From assembly GCA_965112735.1 (NCBI GenBank), contig OZ218954.1, positions 1,488,001 through 1,552,000 on the forward strand: 64,000 nucleotides of DNA, given 5' to 3'. Within the stretch, counting starts at the first letter, position 1; every line of letters starts with the position of its first letter. The notes beneath the pieces are model-generated. The model saw only the letters and a program-made list of their open reading frames with translations. It made no database searches and had not been told where the DNA came from. The position numbers were made by a program, and so were the translations under genes. This stretch comes from Phaeosaccion multiseriatum (taxonomy: Eukaryota; Protista; Ochrophyta, other classes). Shown here piece by piece: positions 39,225 to 56,400 of the stretch.

Positions 39225-39457
39225 CATTGCGAAAACCACTGGAGCTATGAGTGTGAGTGGCAAAGTGGAGGGGGGGAACGTTGGCCTCTTGCGGCCCGCC
39301 TTCGGGTAGAGGAGAGCGCATCTTTAGAAACTTGGCAGGCTCGCGGGTAGAGGTGACTCTGCGACCTTGTTTCAGGTTCACCGCCGAGACTGCACCACAC
39401 AACTGGAGAAGCAGCAGCAATTTCTTCTGTCGCATCACACTATTTTGTATTTTGTGA
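39225..39457 (+). pseudogene. Frameshifted fragment paralogous to the EEP C-terminus at 49860-50130
   Basis: RGERIFRNLAGSRVEVTLRPCFRFTAETAPH vs RGDRIFSNLAVSQAEVTLRPCFSFTAETAPH. DNA-level match such as CCTTGTTTCAG.TTCACCGCCGAGACTGCACCACAC, in inverted orientation. Confidence 0.85.
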
Positions 39458-42796: not shown

Positions 42797-43519
42797 ATGA
42801 GGATCGGAAAGAGAATTATGGAGTTGGCTTTGATGGCATCGTCTCTCAATGGGGTCAGGACGAAGCTAGTCACGAGGGAGGAATCCGAGCCAGCAACGAG
42901 GGGGCTAATTAAAAACAGCAACGAGCAGCTCTTCCACTTGGTTGTGTCGCAGCTGGATCAACATGACGTTCCATATGTTATCATGTATGGAACACTACTG
43001 GGCTTGTGGCGCTCCCAGAGTCTAATACCGAATGACTCCGACTGTGATCTTATGGTGATGGCGGAGGACGCAGACGCTTTTGTGGCCGCTGTTTACGAGG
43101 GTACGAAGCAGTTCGAGAATGTGGCTGTACAGCAATTTCCAAATATCATTCAGATATCAACAGACCCCAAGGCGAAACTTGAAAACTACCATCCCACGAA
43201 GGCGGGCGAAGGCTACGTTATGATGGATATTTACGTGATGATCCCCAACGGCACGAGAGAGGTCATTTTAGACTCTTGGAGCAAACTGCGATACAAATGG
43301 GACCACATCTTTCCAGTGCTTATGATGCCGCTTTACCTCACCGAGACGAACGAGAATGTCACCGTCAGTGTCCCGCATGAACCCCAAGCCATAATCCAAG
43401 CTATTTATGGCAACAACTGGAGAATTCCCATCGATGATGATCACGGCAAGAACCGATCGATAAGTCCGTTCTGTGGCGCGGGGACTAGGGTAGGAAAGGT
43501 AAGAGGGGATTGCTTTTAA
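42797..43519 (+). CDS. LicD/fukutin-family phosphotransferase (nucleotidyltransferase fold), intronless
   Basis: YVIMYGTLLGLWR.QSLIPNDSDCDL, MDIY, IFP, VSVPHEP..I.QAIYGNNWRIP: all hallmark LicD motifs. Confidence 0.9.
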   Translation: MRIGKRIMELALMASSLNGVRTKLVTREESEPATRGLIKNSNEQLFHLVVSQLDQHDVPYVIMYGTLLGLWRSQSLIPNDSDCDLMVMAEDADAFVAAVYEGTKQFENVAVQQFPNIIQISTDPKAKLENYHPTKAGEGYVMMDIYVMIPNGTREVILDSWSKLRYKWDHIFPVLMMPLYLTETNENVTVSVPHEPQAIIQAIYGNNWRIPIDDDHGKNRSISPFCGAGTRVGKVRGDCF

Positions 43520-43895: not shown

Positions 43896-45148
43896 CCGGG
43901 AAGGAGATAGAGGGCAAGAGGAGAACGACGACGTGGCACTAGTCTCGGGTGCCCAAGTCTCGAGCGGGCAGAGCGCTGAAGCGCCCCAGGAGGGAGGGGA
44001 AGAAGAGGGGTGAAAATTGAGGGTCGCATACGTAATATTATCAAATAATTAACGTACTTCCGACTTCTAAAGGTGGCAATGTGTTCGTAAGAGGCAGGCG
44101 GCGCCAGTAGTGGCTAAAGAAGAAAAAAAAGGAGGGGGGGGGGGGGAGGGGTAGGTGCTGTCCGCAAAACGGGTGTGTCCGCCCACCCAGGTTTTACTCT
44201 TAGATAGCGTTGTAAATCGCATCCTCGCCAAGGAGAGCATGTAAAGAGTACCAAATCGGCGCACGGTCATGAGGTATAGCCTCGCGTTGTATCTGGCCCT
44301 TATCTATCGTCATACCCTCTCTTCCCCCTCGATCGAGGGTCAGGATGACGACGAAAAGGGGCCCTTCCCACTCTTTAAATTCTCTCCCTCACTCTGTAGC
44401 TCCTGAAAGGACACTTCGAGTTGCCCAGCACTCAGCAGACTATGTATCCCTCAAGTCTTCTCAAGGGTTTCACATCTCGTGGTCTGCTGGTCGCACACGC
44501 TCCTCCCTCTCCTCACCATTTTTGAGGTGAAAACTGCTGCCATAAGTGTTTCCATCTCGCCTCACCCCTTCTGCTCCACAGCGCCTGCAATCGCACTCTT
44601 AGCTGCTCAACGTCGACTTCCATATGTGGGTCGCAGTCTGCTCAAAGCCATTCCTCCCTCATGGGCTCTTGCTCGCACACGCTCTTCCCCCACTCCCCCC
44701 TTGTTGTTTGAGGCCCAAATTCCCGCCAAAGCAACGGACATTTCAGCTCCACATGTTAGCCCACTATCTCGTAAGACCGCACTCCCAGCTTCTCATCGGC
44801 TATTTGACTACATAATCCGTATTCAGCCCGAAGATTATCACCTCTTGTGTGAGCTACGCCTCTCTCTTTCTCCCTTGTTCAGGGGCAAAGATCTCGTCAA
44901 CATATCAGCACATTTCAACTCCTAAATCGCTCTATACAGACGCAACAATCAGACTTTAAGCTGCTCAACATCTAGAATACTGTCTGTACCTCAGATCTCC
45001 CGAAGATCTTCGCCTGTGGTGCTCTGCAGCGTGCGTAATGCCTCTTTTCCTGAGCCCACTCAAAAATGTGGATTCTACTGACATCCAGGGCGGTTAATTG
45101 ACATACAAGGGGGGGGGGGGCGTCGCTACGCTTCCACACGCGAAAAGG

Positions 45149-46246
45149 ATGATGTATTGTTCGCTCAGGAGGGCCACCATCATTGCTTACATATGCCAGC
45201 AAGTGTTGCTTGTTCTCATCATTCGCTATTCCGAGCAGAGAGCAAATGCGGAACCAGACAGGATAACTTACGTACCCTCAGCAGCAATTGTCTGTTCCGA
45301 GTATCTCAAGCTCGTTCTGAACGCGTGTCTTGAGTTTTTTTTTCAGTACAAGTACATGGAAGGGAATTTGGGGTTCAGCAGTGTGTGCAGGGGTTTGGCG
45401 ACCCTGGAGGCCTTGAAGCTCGCTGTCCCTGCTCTTCTCTACGTAGCCCAGAACAACTTGGTCTTTGTGGCGCTCGGCAACCTCTCTGTGCCCGTGTACC
45501 TGGTCACCAATCAAGGAAAACTACTCGCAACAGCATTATTCAGCAGAGTGTTGCTTGGAAAGTCAATTTCAGCTATTCAATACGCATCTCTGCTCATGCT
45601 GGCAGCTGGGGTATCCATCACGCAACTCTCGTCGAGGGAAGGAGAACAAGGTGACAAAGAGACGATGGGGGATGACAAACTGGTTGGGTTCCTGGCTATT
45701 TCGGCATCTTGTCTTACCTCGGGATTTGCTGGAGTTTACTTTGAGAAGATACTCAAGCAATCCCATACTAAGGTGTCGGTCTACATGAGGAATATGCAGC
45801 TGGCTTTGTGGAGTATCCCGTTGGCATTCCTTCCACTGCTCCACGATCGAGAGACTCTCCAGCGGAATGGCTTCTTCCAAGGTTTCGATCGCGTTGTTTG
45901 GGGTATTGTCATCTGTCAGGCCTCAACTGGGCTGGTTGTGGCGCTCGTCATGAAGTACGCAGACACGATTTGGAAAGGCTTTGCATCGTCCATGGCAGTA
46001 ATCGTGGCCACCATAGTGTCAAAATGTATTTGGAACTCAAAAATTGATCATTGGTTCATCATAGGAGCTGGTGTTGTGCTTGCCGCGGTTCAAAGCTATT
46101 CAAAGTATCCCGCTTCAGCTGACCTGCGGGGAGCATGCCGTTCTGAGGAAGCACTTGGTCCGCTCGCTGGCAAAGCGTCTGCTGAGGCCTCTGGAGAAGA
46201 TGAGGAAGCTTTGATGTACCACCATAGAGTGCCAGCCCACCCCTGA
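45149..46246 (+). CDS. SLC35A-type nucleotide-sugar transporter, intronless
   Basis: SEYLKL, LKLAVPALLYVAQNNL.FVAL.NL, TNQGKLLATALFS..LL, SGFAGVYFEKILK, RNMQL, GFFQGF, GLVVALVMKYADTIWKGFA.S. Confidence 0.93.
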   Translation: MMYCSLRRATIIAYICQQVLLVLIIRYSEQRANAEPDRITYVPSAAIVCSEYLKLVLNACLEFFFQYKYMEGNLGFSSVCRGLATLEALKLAVPALLYVAQNNLVFVALGNLSVPVYLVTNQGKLLATALFSRVLLGKSISAIQYASLLMLAAGVSITQLSSREGEQGDKETMGDDKLVGFLAISASCLTSGFAGVYFEKILKQSHTKVSVYMRNMQLALWSIPLAFLPLLHDRETLQRNGFFQGFDRVVWGIVICQASTGLVVALVMKYADTIWKGFASSMAVIVATIVSKCIWNSKIDHWFIIGAGVVLAAVQSYSKYPASADLRGACRSEEALGPLAGKASAEASGEDEEALMYHHRVPAHP

Positions 46247-47404: not shown

Positions 47405-47797
47405 TTACGCGGCACTTTGAATTTCGCCCTTCACTTCGGTCGTTGAGACCCCCTCCGTCCTTGGAAGATATATCGATTGGCACCCCGCGAACGTAAACTT
47501 ACCCTTCCAGTCGTCACCCATGACGAGGATCGAGGCTTCATACTTTCGTATGTAGTCCTCCTTCAACTCGAGTGACTCTTCCAGGAACACCTCATCAACG
47601 CATCGAAGTTCCTTAATCAGGTCCATGCGCGCCTCCTCGTCGTACACAGGGAGAATTCCTTTCTTGCGAAAATTCAAAGCATCGGAGGACACGCCCACGA
47701 CAAGTCTGTCGCCACGTTCTTTCGCTCGGCGAAGGATTGCAAGGTGGCCTCGGTGAAATAGGTCAAAGGTGCCGAATGTTATGACCGTTTGAGTCAT
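47405..47797 (-). CDS. tagD: Bacterial-type glycerol-3-phosphate cytidylyltransferase-like enzyme (TagD family), 130 aa, intronless
   Basis: MTQTVITFGTFDLFHRGH..IL.RAK..GD.LVVGVSSD..N..KKG, R......+..VDEVF.EES.E.K..YI......LVMGDDW.GKF, YLPRTEGVSTT. This is the stand-alone TagD architecture with HxGH and RTxG(I/V)STT. Confidence 0.92.
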   Translation of the reverse strand: MTQTVITFGTFDLFHRGHLAILRRAKERGDRLVVGVSSDALNFRKKGILPVYDEEARMDLIKELRCVDEVFLEESLELKEDYIRKYEASILVMGDDWKGKFTFAGCQSIYLPRTEGVSTTEVKGEIQSAA

Positions 47798-48285: not shown

Positions 48286-48735
48286 ATACAATGTATCGAG
48301 GTCAATATCGATGTACGAGTACGGTCACGGCCGTCACTTCCTTGGGCGCATCTCTCAGTAGGTATAAACAATTGAAGAGGAAGAGGATAATAGGGTATGC
48401 CAGCATATAGTCGCGTGCGAAAAAAATACCTCAATTCTTTCTCTCTCCCACTACTCCCCTACCTGCTTCCTTGTAACTTCCGCTTTGTATTGACAGTTAT
48501 TTATTTACACGCACGCTCGCGCACACATGTACCGAGACACACATACCGAGACACACACACACGCACAGACACTCACACGCATCCTCTCTCACACTACCCT
48601 CCTACCCTGGTTGCACCACTGCTGGTTGCACTACCCTCCTTCCTCACACACACATACATACAGAGCCTGACACACACACACACATACGCACAGACACCCA
48701 CACACACACACCTCCCTCTCACACTCACTACCCTG

Positions 48736-49075
48736 CTACCCTGGTCGCACAACTGGTTGCACTACCCTCCTCCCTCTGACCCTCTGAAGCGTCCGCTCCT
48801 GAAGCCCCCGAAGCCGCTGCTCCTCTGTCTTCCTCTTGTCTAACGCCTTCCCACCAATAACAACTCGGAGCCGCTCCTCTGTGAGACCCCCGTAGATGCC
48901 AATACAATCGATGTTGGTGGCTCTGGAGATGGCCACGTAGGTGAGGCCAGTCGTCTTCTCCTGTGTGCCCGGAACGAGCACCACCTTTCCCCTCATGGTC
49001 TGACCCTGCGCCTTCCACACCGTCCACGCCCAACTGAGCCTCAGGGGAAACTCCTTCCGAGCCCTGCTGGCCGAT
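48736..49075 (-). mobile_element. Pif1-like helicase C-terminal fragment (Helitron remnant)
   Basis: FPLRLSWAWTVWKAQGQTM...GLTYVAISRA matches Pif1 motifs V-VI; only the 3' end of the helicase is present. Confidence 0.8.
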
Positions 49076-49199
49076 TGGCCACTAGCACTACCTTTCCACT
49101 CGGTGACGACTGGAGAGATAGATAGGGCCAGATACACTCATGGGCCTTTTCAGCTTCGCGTGAGCCGCACTGAGCCTGGGTGAGGCTTTGCTGTATTCT

Positions 49200-49800
49200 C
49201 TCGCCGCAGTAGCAGCCCTGTGGCTTTGCGCCAGCGGAATTTCACAATCCTCGCCAGCGTTGGCACTTTCCCTTCACTCACCTCGTCCAGCTCTAAGCTA
49301 CGCTGCTCCTGCATTGCGCTGGCTGGTAGCCCACTGCGGAGAGCACCAACGGATATGATACCTGCCTGCCTGGCGAACCCTTCCGGAAGGCCGGAAGGCC
49401 GCTCGCTCACCCCATCGATGAACGGCTATGTCAAGTCTCTGTGGTACGCCCGTTGCAGCTGCTCCACACCATTGCCTCGCACCCGTTTCATAGACAGATA
49501 CACTGCGCTGCGCTGCAGGACCTGATAGTGCTCTTCAATCACTCGCCCGTGCTGAGTACAGTAGGCCCCCAGTGATGGCCAAGGCAAGACTGTATAAGGA
49601 CCATCCCACGAATGCTGCAGAGCCTTGAGTTGCGCTGACGGGGGCCCTTCAAGTTCTTCCCCTTCTTCCTGTGCGGCGGCGCCAGGGCGATACAACATCA
49701 CCTTGGTCCCTGGCCGCAGGGGCGTCGGCCAACGGCGTGAGGCATTTGTCAACTGCAACCTCCCGTGGTAGTCACAGCGTCTCCCATTGACCACCGCCGC
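49200..49800 (-). mobile_element. Ty3/gypsy integrase C-terminal (GPY/F) fragment
   Basis: LRPGTKVMLYRP....KALQHSWDGPYTVL, followed by decayed sequence. Confidence 0.6.
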
Positions 49801-49859
49801 AGCCGCAGCCAGACGTGCCGGCAGCTCATTGACCCATGTCGAGCCAGCCAGTCTTGAAT

Positions 49860-52800
49860 TCATCCGCCGTTCCTGGAAGTAAGCTGCAGCACAATCCCCA
49901 AAACCGCGTGATCCGAGAGCAGAAGTTGCGGCCGTTTCTGCTTTCGGCCGTGTGGTGCAGTCTCGGCGGTGAAGCTGAAACAAGGCCGCAGCGTCACCTC
50001 TGCCTGCGAGACTGCCAAGTTGCTAAATATACGGTCTCCTCTATGCCTGCCGTCGTAAGGCGGGCTGCACGTGGCCGGCACAGTGCTGCCTTTGCCGCTG
50101 ACGCTGACAACTCCACTGCCCGCTGCACCAGCAATAGCGGCGCCTTGATCCCCACCCATCACCACAGAGCCACCACCTGCCACCGCTTTGGCTACGACAT
50201 CCCTCACGCGCGAGAATCGATTCTCATCCACCTTATGGACAGAGCCAATTAGGATGGAGTGGAGAGGCGCGTCAGGAAGAGGCCACGAGATGGAGACAAA
50301 CAACCCCATCCGAGCGGCCAACCTCTTTTCAAAACCCTGTGCGTTGGTGAAGCCTGGCTTCGCCGAGTAGTACCCTCCCTCCAGATCGTTGCGCACAATC
50401 CTGGGGTCAAACAGGCGTGCCTTGGACAAGATTGCATTCCCATGCAGCCCCAGGGTGTTGTCCTGACCTCTGGTACGCTGCTGCTCCTCCTCGTTGCCGT
50501 TCGTGAGCTCGACAAACTCCAGCCCCCACGCGTAGTTCATGCCCAATTCGAACGCCAGCATGCGAGTAGTGTGCAGGTTCTCACTCCGCGCCATGCCAAT
50601 GTCCATCTCATTCAGGATTATAATGTCTGGGTTTTGTAGAGCGACTGTCTCCCTCACCGTCTCGGCAAAGGGCAGCCAGTGAGTCCCACGCGCCGCATTG
50701 AACGCCAACACCTTCACAGTAGTGGCAGCAGCATCGTCAGCGCCCCCCATAGCCGCCGGCCGTGATGGTGGCCGAAAGAAGGGAGAGATGGAGTTGTCAA
50801 TCTCTACTTGCGTCAAGTTACCAAAGGTCGTGGTATACAGCGTTTGTAGCTCCTTGTCTCCCGCGCCCTCCGCCCACGCCTTCCTGTCCTCGATCGATGA
50901 GCCCCATAGGCTCGTTGCCTTCTCCATCTCCCATGCTGCGAGAGGAAGATTGGTAGTGAGCCCCGTCTCTGCGTGCGTATAGGTCAAAGAGCGCTCGGCT
51001 TGGTTCTCTCGTACAATGCCAAGCTCGCGGGCCATCGAGTCGGCGTCGCCGTGCCGAAGCACCTGACCAGTGACAGCGTCGACTTCGGTTACGTGTATGA
51101 CTCGGTCGTTCACGGCGAGAATCTCGAGTCCCCTGCCCTCGTGCGCGGCGGCAGACGGTACCCGATGCACGAAAGGAAAGTGCTCTGACAAGCGGCAACA
51201 ATCCAGCGCAGGCTGTGCCTTGGAGTCTGCGCGTCTGCAGGCGGCCTTGTGCTCCTGGCCCGTACCAAGGTACGTACAGTCCCTGGGCAGGCCCCCATGT
51301 CTGTGACTACCCCCGGGAGCCCTGCACGCGTCAAAATTGTATCTCCTCTGCGCTATCTTTAGCGAGGGACCCATCAACATCGTGCCTGGAGGGGGGGGGG
51401 GGGGCAGGGGGCGGGAACAGCGTAGAGGCAAAGCGGGAATGAGGAGCGAGCAAAGCAACCGAAGAAAGGCGGGTGATGGAGGGGGGCTTCGCATCAATGC
51501 TTACGTAGAGAATTTCCGCTGACTGAAAAAAACAAAACAAAATAAAGCATCCCCCCCTCTTACTCTCAAGCGTGCCAAAGCTTAGCTCCTCACGCTATGT
51601 AGTACCTGCGAATGGATACTCTCGCATCGGGAAGATGGCTTCAGACGGCCAAAAGATATTCAGCTCCTGCTCCAAGTGGGTCACCCACGCCTGTTTGGAA
51701 GGGTGGAGAGTCTCGTGAGGGAGGCCCGGAGCGTGACTGGCAGAGTACGCGGCGCCATGGCTGCAGGCAGCAAAAGAGGACTACTCCTTCTCAGACGCAG
51801 GCGAAGGCAACGGAGCCAGTGCCGCAAACTCTACTCTACTCTCGTATCTCACCCGAGAAGTCCAGCATTGTTCCGCCCCGCCACAAGTATGAATCAACAC
51901 TCACCTCACGGATACCAGCCACGCCGTTCTTGGTGTCATTTTTCCACATGAACGCGTCTACGAAGGGCCAGCCCATCTTCTTCTGGGTCCCTGGGTAGCC
52001 CTCCGGCCATATCTTGACCGCGTTCAGCATCGGCTCGCAGTGAAACTTCATATCTCCCACGGTAAAGCCCCGGCACGCGGAGACGAACCGATCGAGGTAG
52101 TCAAAGGGCACGATCACGTCAATGTCATCGTCCCACGGAATGGGTCCTCCGTGCAGCACAGCTCCGAGGTGAGAGCCTGCCCACAACATGCAGGTAGTGC
52201 CGACTTGCTTGGCAACAAGGTCGCACACTTTGAGGAGACAAACCTCTGAAGCCGCGGCCTCTGTGGTAAGAGCAGTCACCTGGAGAGACCTGTCGTGGAA
52301 CGAAAAGTAGTTCACCCGCTGGTCGCGGAAATAGCTCACCACCTCAGGGCATAGCTCCCCCACCCAAGCGTCTGGGAACACCCCCACATCGGAAGCTGCA
52401 TACTTGGACGGTACGTCTCTCTGCTCATTCGCAGCCTCTCCTCCCCTCTGACCCTTGCGTTCCCCCTTTCCTTGCGCAGGAGCGAAGTAACTGAGGGTAG
52501 CATCGGTGAAGGCCTGTCTCTCACCAAGGCGTTGGAAGAGAGCATCGTCTTGGGAGCCTGTCCCTGCCTTCTTCTCTCCAGCCAGCTCGCGCAGCTGATC
52601 AAGCGAGTCGAGGGAAGGAGGACAGAGATGGTTCCCTCGTACTAATCCAAAGTCAGAAAGGTGATATTCTGCGGTCTCGGGAAGTGCCTCCTGCTCCTGC
52701 CTTGCAGATGTTAGAACGTCTTTGACTACGTCTTGATCATGGTCCAGCCTCGGTATCCGGTACATGCTGTTGAGGAAGGCAAATATGGACCCAAGGACAC

Positions 52801-52918
52801 ACAGCGTAATGATGAGAATGTACCGCTTTGCCGCCAGGTCGGCCGTCCGCGGCGCGTTTGCCGCCCATCTTCCTGAATTCAACCCCCCATTCCTCATTCT
52901 TTCTCTTTTTTTTCTCAT
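49860..52918 (-). CDS. Type II membrane LicD-EEP (endonuclease/exonuclease/phosphatase) fusion protein, 3 exons, ~874 aa
   Basis: Exons 52918-51905, 51690-51606 and 51385-49860 (GT-AG, phases 0 and 1) join the two track ORFs. TM YILIITLCVLGSIFAFL. LicD motifs WAGSHLGAVLHGGPIPWDDDIDV, GWPFVDAF, IFPMREYPFAGTMLMGP..RY...C. EEP motifs VLAFNAARG, PDIIILNEMD.GMARS, HGNAILSK, MGGDQ, DRIF, SDH. Confidence 0.85.
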
Positions 52919-53026
52919 CGAGGGACCAGGGACCAGGGGTGCGTGGTGAGCTAGTGATCCGTCGTGGCTCACAGTTGCCGCCTGCGATCCTCTCTTCTCT
53001 CCTTCACCCTGCATTCCAAGGCAGCC

Positions 53027-53367
53027 ATGGCGGGCCATGAGGACCCGAAGCAGCGAATCCGAGAGCTCCGCCAACTGGAGCACCGCGTACACACGTCGGT
53101 GGAGGCTTCGAATGGGATTGTGACCCTCCTCCAGCACCTGGCCCTCTCCCACCCCACATCGGTGACGCTCGCTGCCATGCACGCTCTGCGCCGCGTGTTT
53201 ACGCTGCTCATCGACGAAGGAGAGATGAAAGAGGGGAGGGGGAAAGGGCTTCGGAGGAAGAAGCAGCAGCAAGAGCAGGACGAAGAGGAGGGTGAGAAGG
53301 AGGGCGGGGGTCCATCGAAACGAGCAAGGGCCTCTTCCGACAAGGGACGCCAGGGGACAGGAGAGAA

Positions 53368-53406
<39 letters not shown>

Positions 53407-56400
53407 GGCAGGGGAGAAGAAGCCAGAGGAAGCTATGCTGGAGTACCGACAGTGGCTATGGGCCCGCTTCGACGAGTTCGTCACCAGGCTGACGTGCTGG
53501 CTGTCGGATTGCGACGACCTCAATATACAAGGCCCGGCCCTCCGCACCCTCATGGAGTTTGTGAGGAGGGATCGCGCTGACGGTCACCTAAGCAGGGGTC
53601 TCATCTTCACGGCCGTCTTGGACCGCTTGCTGTTGGTGGAGGGCGGTTTGCCGACCAAGCTGCTGGAGGTGTTTGCATCGGAGTTCATCAACAGCTATGA
53701 CGACGTTCGCTACCATCTCCTTGTGAGGATGAAGGCCATGATTGACCGGGTACTGCTCCTGGATAAACAGGTTGGTTGTGACACAGTCTCTGTGGTCTCT
53801 ACTCACTCCGCTCTTTCCCATTCCCTCTCCTCCTGTTCGGGCACTTGCGTTTGTCGTCCATTCCTCCAATGCACACCGGTGTTATCATTTTGCGTCTTCG
53901 TTCATGAACCACGCTGATGATGATGATCCTGTGCGTCTGACTATTGGCAATGGGCAACCCCCGCCCTCTACGAGCTCCTTTACACACACGTCCTGTAGCA
54001 TGGAACTCACCCCTGTGATCCCCTGCTCTCTCTCATGAATTAGGACGACGGCGGTCGCGAGAAGGGAGGAGGCAGGCTTTCTGTGGCTGCTCCCTCCCAC
54101 TCACCCCTTCTCAAAATGTCCTCCTCTGCCGGCGGTGGCGGCAACTTGTCCGTGTTCGGAGCAAAGAGCAAGGAGAAGAGGTCAAGACGGAGGATCACCG
54201 CCCCGCTCAGCGCTCGGGACTTTGCAGAGAACTGTATCAATGTGTTGATGGAAGTGAGGATGGTGGAGGAGCAGGCCGACCTAACGGCCTTCCTGGTGGA
54301 GGTTTCCGACGACGGGGCCGATGCGGAGGAGGAGGGAGGAGAGGGGGGGGATACGGACGAAGAAGGCCAGGAAGAGGACGAAGCAACGGGCGGGGGGAAG
54401 GGAGACGTAATGTCCTCCGCACCAACGCCAGGGGCAAATAAACGAAAGCGAGGGCTGGGTGGGGGCGGAGCGGCTTCTGCAGCGGATAAGGCCCCGAAGC
54501 TGAAGCGGGTGCAGAGGATCGGCCCGCATCGGCGAGCCTTCGGGTCGGCGTGGCTGGCATGCTTGCAGCTGCCTGTACAGCAGGAGCGCTACAGAGCTGT
54601 TCTCACCTTCTTGCCCGAGCATGTCATGCCCTACATGGGAAGTGCGCTGAAGCTTGCGGACTTCCTGACCGAGTACGTGCGGCGGGGAGCCTTGATCCCC
54701 CCATTGCTTTGGGGCGAGGAGGGATGAGGGTGGGAGTGGCGAGCTTTTGTGTCAAGGTGGCTCACTCGAAAGGTCCTGTGGGCTTTCTCTCCGTTTCTCT
54801 GGTGCTGCGTAGGTTGCTGAGGAGCTCTTGCCTCCCACTCACTTGGCCCAGCCTCTCGTTTCCTTCTCTCCTCCTCCTCCTCCTCCTCCTCCTCCTCCTC
54901 CTCCCTCCTTGCGCAGGAGCTATAAGCTGGGTGGTATATACAGCGTTCTCAGTATAGACGCGCTCTTCATCCTGATGCAGGAGCACAACCTGGACCATCC
55001 GCAGTTCTACGACTCGCTGTACGCCCTTCTCACCACGGACACCTTCTACGCCCGCTACCGCGCTCGCTTCTTTCGTATGTGTGAGCTGTACCTGAGCTCG
55101 TCCCACCTCCCTGCCTACCTCGTCGCGGCGTTTTGTAAGCGTCTCGCGAGAGTTGCCTTGTCCGCACCCCCCTCGGGGTCGCTCTTTGCATTGGCGCTCG
55201 TCAAGAACATGTTGCAGAGGCATCGAGAGGTGAGAGAGAGAGAGAGAGAGAGAGAGAGGCGGTGCAGTGAAGGAGGAGAGGAGGGCGGAGGGCCGTAGAG
55301 AACGAGGCAGAAGGAATGTGTGATCCCACACGAGAGAGCGTCCCGTGTTTGTGTCTAGTTGGGGGATTCAAGAGAGGCGAGATTAAGACAGGGCACCTTT
55401 TTGTAGATGAGGGGTGGTGAGAAAGAAAAAGGGTCACTCACTGATGTTGTGTTCTTTCTGGCTGTGCAGGTGGCAGTGCTCATCCATCGAGATAGCGCAG
55501 AGGTCAAGAGCCTCTTATCGGCCTTGAAAGAGCGGCACGAGCAGCGGAAGCAGCAGGAGCATCCGCCAAAGATCTCGGTCAGCGGCAAGGAGAAGGAAGT
55601 GGAGGAGCAGAAAGAGGAGCACCAGCCGCAAAAGAAGACGGTGAAAAAAAGCAAAAGCAAAAAGGCAGGGACGGTGGAAGTGCGAGCAGTAGGCATGGAA
55701 TCTACTGGGGGTGGGGTGGAGCGGGAGGGGCAGGAGAGGCAATCGCGCCTGCTCTCTCGGTACGATGGCTTTGACGCCCACACCAACGTGACGGCCGAGA
55801 CGAATGCTCTCAACTCCTCCTTGTGGGAAGTAGCGGCCCTTCAGGTGAGCTCACGGACAACTCTCCCTTCCATCGCCGCAGCCACACTACTCTTCCCCTT
55901 CCTCTTCTTCTTCGTCCTACCCTGCTGACGCTGCTGCTGGCGATGCTACCTTTTCCTGTCTCCTACCCTCATCCACACACAAACAGAGCCATTACCACCC
56001 TGCGGTGTCGTCTCTGGCGAAGACGTTCCGCCAGAAGATGGGCCCCAAGGCCGTCTCCCTCAAAGTCGGCCAGGAGTACGCGGGGCACACCTACAAGACG
56101 CTGTTCGACGAGGAGATGAAGAAGAAGAAGGCCAAGAGCGCTCTGACCTTCGTGTGAGTTCACTCGCTTCTTTCCCCGGCCGCTGCTCCTGCTCCTGCTG
56201 CTGGCTGCTCCTGCTCCTGCTGCTGCTGCTGGTGCTGCTGCTTGTACCCTCGTTCATACGTCCCTGCACTGGAAAAGTTGTTCGACTTTCTGCAATCTGT
56301 ATTGATGGACATTCAAGTTCTTTCTGCCGCTCGATCCTTCTCTCTTCCTCTCCGGCAGTACTCGCCCGTCCTCTTGGCTCACGTCCGCCCCCTCGACACC

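Follow-up and report, generated by a model that had tools for sequence, protein, structure and literature searches.

A spliced gene of Phaeosaccion multiseriatum predicted to join a LicD-type phosphotransferase domain to an EEP-fold phosphoesterase domain

Introduction

Eukaryotic LicD-type enzymes are best known from fukutin and FKRP, whose loss results in muscular dystrophy. Beyond a few cases, the addition of phospho-alcohols to glycans and their removal are poorly understood. In two known systems, a phosphodiester is written onto a glycan and one of its ester bonds is cut by a second enzyme: N-acetylglucosamine (GlcNAc)-1-phosphotransferase and the uncovering enzyme in the mannose-6-phosphate pathway of animals, and LicD and the Pce esterase in pneumococci. 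Here we analyze a 64,000-nucleotide stretch of the genome of the ochrophyte Phaeosaccion multiseriatum (hereafter the window, in whose positions coordinates are given), where a gene on the minus strand is predicted to join a LicD-type phosphotransferase domain to a phosphoesterase domain of the endonuclease/exonuclease/phosphatase (EEP) fold in a single chain.

Both domains belong to known superfamilies. In a 2009 survey of the nucleotidyltransferase (NTase) fold, in which LicD is group XXIII, the fusion partners were NAD(P)-binding and glycosyltransferase-like domains and included no EEP domain (Kuchta et al. 2009). We found no paper on a LicD-EEP fusion or on LicD in algae, nor was the fusion found in the literature on phosphodiesters, glycans, diatoms and the Golgi. 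An initial annotation of this DNA had called the architecture unfamiliar. In sequence databases, it is in fact common.

Results

A single three-exon gene

The mechanical list of open reading frames (ORFs) contained two large ORFs in this region, 51836-53272 and 49860-51497. The initial annotation had read them as one spliced gene with a donor at 51905/51904, a middle exon at 51690-51606 and an acceptor before 51385. All of these positions agree with the sequence, and the evidence below supports one three-exon gene of about 873 residues (Table 1). The start ATG lies at 52918 and exon 1 closes at the donor GAG/GTGAGT, beyond which read-through of intron 1 leads to a stop after 22 codons. Exon 2 ends at the donor CAG/GTACT, and a long C-rich tract precedes the acceptor of intron 2. 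The lengths of both introns leave a remainder of 1 when divided by three, each intron shifts the frame by one, and the frame is open across all 873 codons of the three exons. When eight homologues were compared with the raw region using tblastn, exons 1 to 3 were matched in three different frames (-3, -1 and -2), and the exon 3 matches of five of the eight homologues started exactly at 51386.

Homology searches and structure predictions were performed exon by exon. The closest full-length relative (P0001, 792 residues) was matched by all three exons in BLASTP searches: residues 181-333 of exon 1 matched P0001 residues 95-257 (E-value 1e-35), residues 14-28 of exon 2 matched 274-288 (E-value 2e-4) and residues 5-499 of exon 3 matched 294-730 (E-value 3e-89). 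The matches are collinear and gap-free, an arrangement that is far beyond what chance would produce. Exon 1 has a conserved Glu at its end, and the distance from this Glu to the exon 2 FP motif in the family alignment differs by no more than one residue from that in other members. Two relatives are encoded without any interruption. The first (P0021, 739 residues) is a single ORF on a contig (L006) whose other genes are plainly eukaryotic, encoding a PH-domain protein, a filamin-like protein, a prenyltransferase in pieces and a Na/H exchanger; the second (P0056, 647 residues) is an ORF on another eukaryotic contig (L088). The collinear homology and these uninterrupted ORFs, together with the three tblastn frames, support the proposal of a single gene.

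An in-frame ATG is also present at 53038, 40 codons upstream of 52918. We prefer the start at 52918 because the upstream ATG would overlap the start, near 53027, of a divergent gene on the plus strand. The predicted signal anchor is identical with either start.

The LicD half

Exon 1 matched the Pfam LicD profile (PF04991) at 43.7 bits (cut-off 22.6 bits, E-value 4.4e-11), over profile positions 3-47 only. The acidic motif, WDDDID in the window protein, is nearly invariant in the family alignments. The C-terminal LicD motif (FP..Y.F.G...P..RY) is whole only after splicing, as had been proposed: exon 2 contributes IFPMREYPFA, at the place where the family consensus reads YFPTRPYYFGG, and together with the opening codons of exon 3 it aligns with P0001 residues 274-310.

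A profile of the 95-member family, searched against solved structures, matched FKRP (6KAJ) with an E-value of 3e-4. This alignment begins at the hG[GS] motif, passes the acidic motif and includes the FP..Y.F.G...P stretch, ending at FKRP residue 423. It places WDDDID and PFVDAF of the window protein with FKRP D360/D362/D364/D416, and these four residues are essential in FKRP (PMC6965139). The fold itself was predicted on a natural homologue, P0021, standing in for the window protein. Its N-terminal 340 residues gave a model with a predicted local distance difference test (pLDDT) score of 87.9, for which the top 11 Foldseek matches listed were FKRP chains (E-value 3e-7); LnuA and ANT(2''), both small nucleotidyltransferases, came next. 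In NCBIfam, the LicD half was best matched by the glycolipid cholinephosphotransferase Mf1, at 29 bits against an equivalog cut-off of 225 bits. Sequence and model together support the assignment of the N-terminal half as a LicD/FKRP-type phosphotransferase domain with predicted transferase activity.

The EEP half

Exon 3 continues from the end of the LicD domain through a middle region, conserved in two family alignments, into a C-terminal domain for which Pfam Exo_endo_phos (PF03372) scored 19.0 bits, below the cut-off of 24.5 bits. In the homologues that we scanned, this half was likewise below the threshold or unmatched. Since it is sub-threshold in every member scanned, the fusion is invisible in Pfam-based architecture views. 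Searched as a single sequence, the EEP half matched no solved structure, and the 95-sequence profile matched FKRP only, at the LicD end, with no match for the EEP half. A search of the ESM Atlas returned only generic bacterial EEP clusters. Because the sequence searches against solved structures gave no EEP match, the fold is demonstrated by prediction.

The AlphaFold model of exon 3 had a pLDDT of 85.4 overall and mostly 93-98 over most of the EEP domain, and Foldseek identified it as a four-layer EEP fold with a probability of 1.0. The fold matches mainly cover residues 216-503, downstream of the middle region. VIA-align gave Z scores of 19.4 to 4RUW, 18.5 (3MPR) and 18.0 (4C1R) to the bacterial enzyme BT3783, about 18 to TDP2 and 17.8 to human neutral sphingomyelinase, with PDE12, nocturnin and CNOT6L close behind. 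The scores spanned 15.6-19.4 over the 50 listed entries, and 291 chains reached a Z of at least 8. We rejected a structural placement of this half in any one EEP subfamily, because the Z scores of TDP2, BT3783, PDE12, nocturnin and the sphingomyelinases are tied within about two units.

We assigned the catalytic residues by motif order and by alignment to bacterial members. Among 95 sequences, the EEP residues N229, E259, D261, H314, N316, H383, D412, D450 and D491-H492 are invariant or nearly so. In the catalytic set, N229 is present in 95 of 95 sequences, E259 in 91, D412 in 89, D450 in 93, and D491 and H492 in 92 each. The initial annotation had described an in-frame EEP domain ending in SDH, with GDQ where the family usually has GDxN. 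Both motifs are found (Table 1), and GDQ proved typical of the whole fusion family rather than specific to this gene: the residue after D412 is Gln in 52 of the 95 sequences and Glu in 21, while the +2 position is unconserved and is Asn in five (for example P0075). Where the window protein reads GDQG, the aligned residues of bacterial relatives are GDFN. Together, sequence and model support a C-terminal half that is an EEP-fold, metal-dependent phosphoesterase domain with predicted activity.

Topology and conserved cysteines

The type II topology that had been suggested fits the protein, which has a single hydrophobic stretch (residues 34-52) after a Lys/Arg-rich N-terminus. The tail ahead of this stretch contains 10 Lys/Arg and 2 Asp/Glu residues, so that both catalytic halves are predicted to be luminal by the positive-inside rule. 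Six cysteines are conserved in the family (exon 3 positions 62, 212, 418, 439, 453 and 468), in 85-93 of the 95 aligned sequences. The signal anchor supports a luminal location, where these cysteines may form disulfides.

The window copy retains only Cys 62, 439 and 468. Position 212, a Cys in 86 of the 95 sequences, is a Met, and the window copy alone has a Cys at neither 418 nor 453, each of which is a Cys in 92 of the 95. The joint loss of Cys 418 and 453 fits the loss of one disulfide. As the reading frame has no interruption and no family-invariant residue is missing, the window gene is probably diverged but live.

The fusion in other eukaryotes

A search with exon 3 found 189 relatives, of which the 120 listed were used for counting. 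In at least 53 of these 120, BLASTP with exon 1 placed a LicD part N-terminal to the EEP part, always collinearly, and further long relatives hold a more divergent LicD. The named sources include Thalassiosira, Minutocellus, Detonula, Amphora, Pseudo-nitzschia, a Bacillariaceae metagenome-assembled genome, the blastoclad fungus Paraphysoderma sedebokerense and a EukProt record coded Pgem, alongside many metagenomic eukaryotes. By its sequence record, the LicD-EEP fusion is widespread in protists. In databases, the fusion proteins are sometimes automatically named EEP hydrolases.

Relatives of 300-470 residues could be taken for stand-alone eukaryotic EEP genes. For at least one of them, P0039, we rejected this reading: a LicD ORF lies upstream in the same frame, and the single stop between the two is most likely part of a small intron that was misread by prokaryote-style gene calling. 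At L005:2519-5071, a LicD-EEP gene is divided at one in-frame stop into metagenomic gene products of 410 and 438 residues, and some other stand-alone EEP entries of this length may be such artefacts. Since the EEP half is sub-threshold in Pfam and such gene calling splits the gene, architecture surveys undercount the family.

The genome to which the window belongs (67.1 Mb, 22 contigs) contains one full LicD-EEP copy and three dead fragments, each a partial EEP copy. One lies in the window at 39266-39409 on the plus strand (65% identity, residues 430-481). Another lies about 46 kb past the window end (G000:C5:1597818-1598207, minus strand; 83% identity, residues 348-485). The third is on another contig (G000:C14:1652937-1653041; 63% identity) and contains two stops.

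Bacterial relatives of the EEP half

We scanned one genome per prokaryotic species with tblastn (E-value ≤1e-3). Relatives of the EEP half occurred at 454 bacterial loci, of which the best 80 were kept; among these, identity over the best segment was 30-45%. Two bacterial relatives that we read, 341 and 357 residues long, stand alone, have no obvious signal peptide and pass Pfam Exo_endo_phos over the full profile (1e-10 and 1e-12). The loops GMARS..HT and GLHGNAILS, the most conserved in the eukaryotic family, are common to the bacterial proteins, which makes a chemically similar substrate moiety plausible.

In Aureimonas glaciei (L025:610-6945), the gene order is a UgpB-like binding protein, a UgpA-like permease, UgpE, UgpC, a xylose-isomerase-like TIM barrel and the EEP protein, with UgpE and UgpC above their NCBIfam cut-offs. 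Within 6 kb of the EEP gene at the best 80 of the 454 loci, there was a UgpE-type permease at 38, a UgpC-like ATPase at 59, a TIM barrel at 24 and a LicD at none. The ugp operon of E. coli is ugpBAECQ and closes with the glycerophosphodiesterase UgpQ. At the A. glaciei locus and 37 further ones, the bacterial EEP gene closes a ugpBAEC-type operon, often downstream of a TIM-barrel gene, and so takes the operon place of UgpQ. The likeness to UgpQ and GlpQ, of the GDPD family, is one of operon position and presumed substrate only: the LicD-EEP protein has no GDPD match in Pfam or NCBIfam, and its predicted fold is EEP, not the GDPD TIM barrel. We found no functional annotation for the bacterial EEP relatives in Ugp-type operons.

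In an unrooted tree of 170 sequences, the eukaryote-type EEP domains fell on one side of a branch with a Shimodaira-Hasegawa-like approximate likelihood ratio test (SH-aLRT) support of 100; as the tree has no outgroup, it does not give the direction of transfer.

Genomic neighbourhood

Three genes within 10 kb of the LicD-EEP gene encode a TagD-like cytidylyltransferase, an SLC35A-type transporter and a second, stand-alone LicD. In NCBIfam, the TagD-like protein was best matched by glycerol-3-phosphate cytidylyltransferase, with 118.5 bits (cut-off 165.4 bits). The stand-alone LicD resembles the fused LicD half with an E-value of only 0.01. A classic LicD gene also adjoins the LicD-EEP ORF of the activated-sludge eukaryotic contig L088 (L088:2022-5671), as in the window, and the stand-alone LicDs of the two loci resemble each other (E-value 2e-10).

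About 1.5 kb (48397-49860) separate the 3' end of the LicD-EEP gene from the TagD-like gene, with minus-strand ORFs at 48736-49137 and 49426-49860, neither of which has a Pfam match, and a C/A-rich low-complexity stretch on the plus strand. This interval could be mobile-element remnants or a long 3' untranslated region. On the other side, the divergent plus-strand gene (52964-53917, likely ATG near 53027) has no Pfam match and contains Ala-rich and Gln/Glu-rich runs. Its start is about 110 bp from the LicD-EEP start codon, so any shared promoter region is very short.

Table 1. Positions of the LicD-EEP gene, its predicted protein features and its neighbours in the window.
Feature	Coordinates	Strand	Remarks
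Exon 1	51905..52918	-	338 codons; basic N-terminus, signal anchor, variable stem, N-terminal and central LicD catalytic domain
Predicted type II signal anchor	52763..52819	-	Exon 1 residues 34-52; top 19-residue Kyte-Doolittle window, mean 2.26
Acidic metal/donor motif D-D-D-I-D	52118..52132	-	Exon 1 residues 263-267, right after the hG[GS] motif AGSHLGA
Third NTase-fold acidic residue, Asp321 (PFVDAF)	51956..51958	-	Aligned with the FKRP D416 region; nearly invariant Asp
Intron 1	51691..51904	-	214 nt, GTGAGT...AG; acceptor AG 51692-51691
Exon 2	51606..51690	-	85 nt; first part of the LicD C-terminal motif (IFPMREYPFA)
Intron 2	51386..51605	-	220 nt, GTACTA...AG; acceptor AG 51387-51386
Exon 3	49860..51385	-	LicD domain end, conserved middle region, EEP domain, TGA stop 49862-49860
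Conserved middle region	50739..51206	-	Exon 3 residues ~60-215; LDCC..FPF motif, small beta unit and helices
EEP domain (predicted)	49875..50738	-	Exon 3 residues 216-503; fold match
G-D-Q	50145..50153	-	Residues 411-413; replaces canonical G-D-x-N
S-D-H	49908..49916	-	Residues 490-492; terminal catalytic Asp-His of the EEP fold
TagD-like cytidylyltransferase gene	47405..47797	-	Pfam CTP_transf_like 3.9e-24
SLC35A-type nucleotide-sugar transporter gene	45098..46246	+	Pfam Nuc_sug_transp 2.7e-83, full profile length
Second, stand-alone LicD gene	42797..43519	+	Different subfamily; Pfam LicD 5.9e-10

Discussion

We propose that the protein would consist of a short basic cytosolic tail, one signal anchor and a variable stem, followed by the LicD domain, the middle region and the EEP domain in the lumen of the secretory pathway. 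The LicD half would transfer an alcohol-phosphate from a donor activated with cytidine diphosphate (CDP) to a sugar hydroxyl of a luminal glycan or glycolipid, the products being a phosphodiester and cytidine monophosphate (CMP). Our best guess for the donor is CDP-glycerol, which the neighbouring TagD-like enzyme would make and the neighbouring SLC35A-type transporter would import. The EEP half would then hydrolyse one ester bond of the phosphodiester made by the LicD half. It might take off the alcohol, so that a phosphomonoester stays on the glycan (uncovering), or remove the whole alcohol-phosphate (trimming or editing); we consider these two options about equally likely.

For the general form of this proposal, in which the LicD half builds a glycan phosphodiester and the EEP half processes it, we estimate a probability of roughly 0.45. 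The narrower claim, that the family is a one-chain machine that adds glycerol-phosphate or another alcohol-phosphate and then removes the alcohol to leave a phosphomonoester, seems to us rather improbable. The link to glycerol-phosphate chemistry comes from the bacterial EEP gene at the place of UgpQ, the shared loops and the TagD-like, transporter and LicD neighbours. BT3783 provides a precedent for EEP action on a phosphorylated glycan, as this EEP enzyme was shown to strip phosphate from phosphorylated high-mannose glycans.

Several points weigh against the coupled proposal. A writer and an eraser in one chain would be a futile cycle if both acted fully. The EEP half lacks the GDxN Asn and scores below the Pfam threshold, and its chemistry may differ from that of a plain hydrolase. 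The donor could be another CDP-alcohol, because the TagD-like protein is below the equivalog cut-off, and in four other contigs inspected, which have short flanks, no TagD or transporter gene lies beside the fusion gene. Many of the bacterial loci come from few genera and are therefore not independent. Finally, the window copy is an outlier with conserved cysteines missing, on an end branch of 0.64 against a median of 0.16, and the constraint on it may be relaxed.

The best-surviving alternative, which we nevertheless consider unlikely, is that the fusion is real and the substrate of the EEP half is not the LicD product. The EEP half would instead cleave a phospholipid or sphingolipid head group, as neutral sphingomyelinases do, or take an earlier phosphoester off the acceptor to prepare it. 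The tied fold matches do include neutral and bacterial sphingomyelinases (Z 16-17.8), and the LicD half has its best NCBIfam match, far under the cut-off, in the glycolipid enzyme Mf1. However, the fold scores do not separate EEP subfamilies, and the fact that two diverged LicD subgroups have both stably kept the fusion speaks for coupled steps. Nor was a hydrophobic element for membrane insertion seen, although no search aimed at one was made.

The GDxN Asn has been lost throughout the family, with Gln or Glu next to the catalytic Asp, and this allows two other readings, each of which we hold to be improbable. In the first, the EEP half is a transferase that would work by transesterification and place the phospho-alcohol, or else the phosphate of the glycan, on a different hydroxyl, a change of chemistry that the altered motif would reflect. 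The EEP domain of the PGAP2IP/Cwh43 type has a proposed role in lipid exchange on glycosylphosphatidylinositol anchors, and one bacterial relative weakly matches the model of this type (E-value 0.003). Yet all other hydrolase residues are kept, and Asn is found at the +2 position in 5 of the 95 sequences. In the second, no better placed, the EEP half is a catalytically dead module that binds or scaffolds the phosphorylated acceptor for the LicD half. The sub-threshold Pfam score would suit this role, and the non-catalytic stem domain of FKRP, which holds the acceptor phosphate, is a precedent (PMC6965139). Nine positions of catalytic or metal-binding type are, however, 93-100% conserved over the 95 sequences, which is unusual for a dead domain.

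Very improbable, in our view, is an EEP half that acts on nucleotides and hydrolyses the released CMP or the CDP-alcohol donor, thereby pulling or limiting the transfer. Among its fold neighbours, CNOT6L (with CMP or AMP), nocturnin and PDE12 do bind nucleotides. SLC35 transporters are antiporters for which CMP is the counter-substrate in the import of a CDP- or CMP-linked donor, so its destruction would hinder donor supply; moreover, the bacterial relatives adjoin organophosphate importers and not nucleotide metabolism. Least credible of all is a truncated LicD gene ending near 51836 beside an independent EEP gene starting near 51500, or a decaying pseudogene: the long branch, the three lost cysteines and the dead partial copies elsewhere in the genome point that way, but all codons are open, no family-invariant residue is missing, exons 2 and 3 each carry part of the LicD motif so that neither ORF holds the whole domain, and the exon 3 frame has no ATG upstream of the acceptor.

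The fusion is conserved between diatoms and a blastoclad fungus, which suggests that glycan phosphodiesters undergo an as yet undescribed processing step in the secretory pathway. The fusion also provides a first functional handle on the many unstudied bacterial EEP proteins of Ugp-type phosphate-scavenging operons.

Comparison with known systems

The LicD half is most like FKRP and fukutin, the human ribitol-5-phosphate transferases, with which it shares the predicted catalytic fold, the hG[GS] motif and Asp set, the predicted type II topology and the expected CDP-alcohol donor. Its identity to them is only about 20%, and FKRP differs in having an N-terminal glycosyltransferase-like stem domain and a zinc-finger loop (PMC6965139) and no EEP domain. 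The bacterial phosphocholine transferases LicD1 and LicD2 and Mycoplasma Mf1 share the Pfam family PF04991 and the chemistry of alcohol-phosphate transfer from a CDP-alcohol. Unlike the window protein, they have no signal anchor of its type and no fused esterase.

The EEP half resembles the stand-alone bacterial EEP proteins in ugpBAEC-type operons of, for example, Aureimonas glaciei, Inquilinus and Kaistia in its EEP core, at 33-45% identity, and in the shared loops. Unlike the fusion, these proteins have the canonical GDFN, and they lack its conserved cysteines, its middle region and its LicD half. With the mannosyl-6-phosphatase BT3783 of Bacteroides thetaiotaomicron (4C1R; apo form 3MPR), it shares the EEP fold over about 225 residues. 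BT3783 is a catabolic enzyme of a gut bacterium with about 14% identity and no transferase fusion, and the tied Z scores of TDP2, PDE12 and sphingomyelinase indicate no specific kinship with it.

The animal uncovering system and the pneumococcal LicD/Pce pair share only their logic with the proposed mechanism: there is no homology, their two steps are carried by separate proteins with other folds, and their donors are UDP-GlcNAc and CDP-choline. If adding and then uncovering is indeed what the fusion does, it would provide a kinase-free route to phosphorylated protist glycans, parallel to the mannose-6-phosphate pathway of animals and built from unrelated folds.

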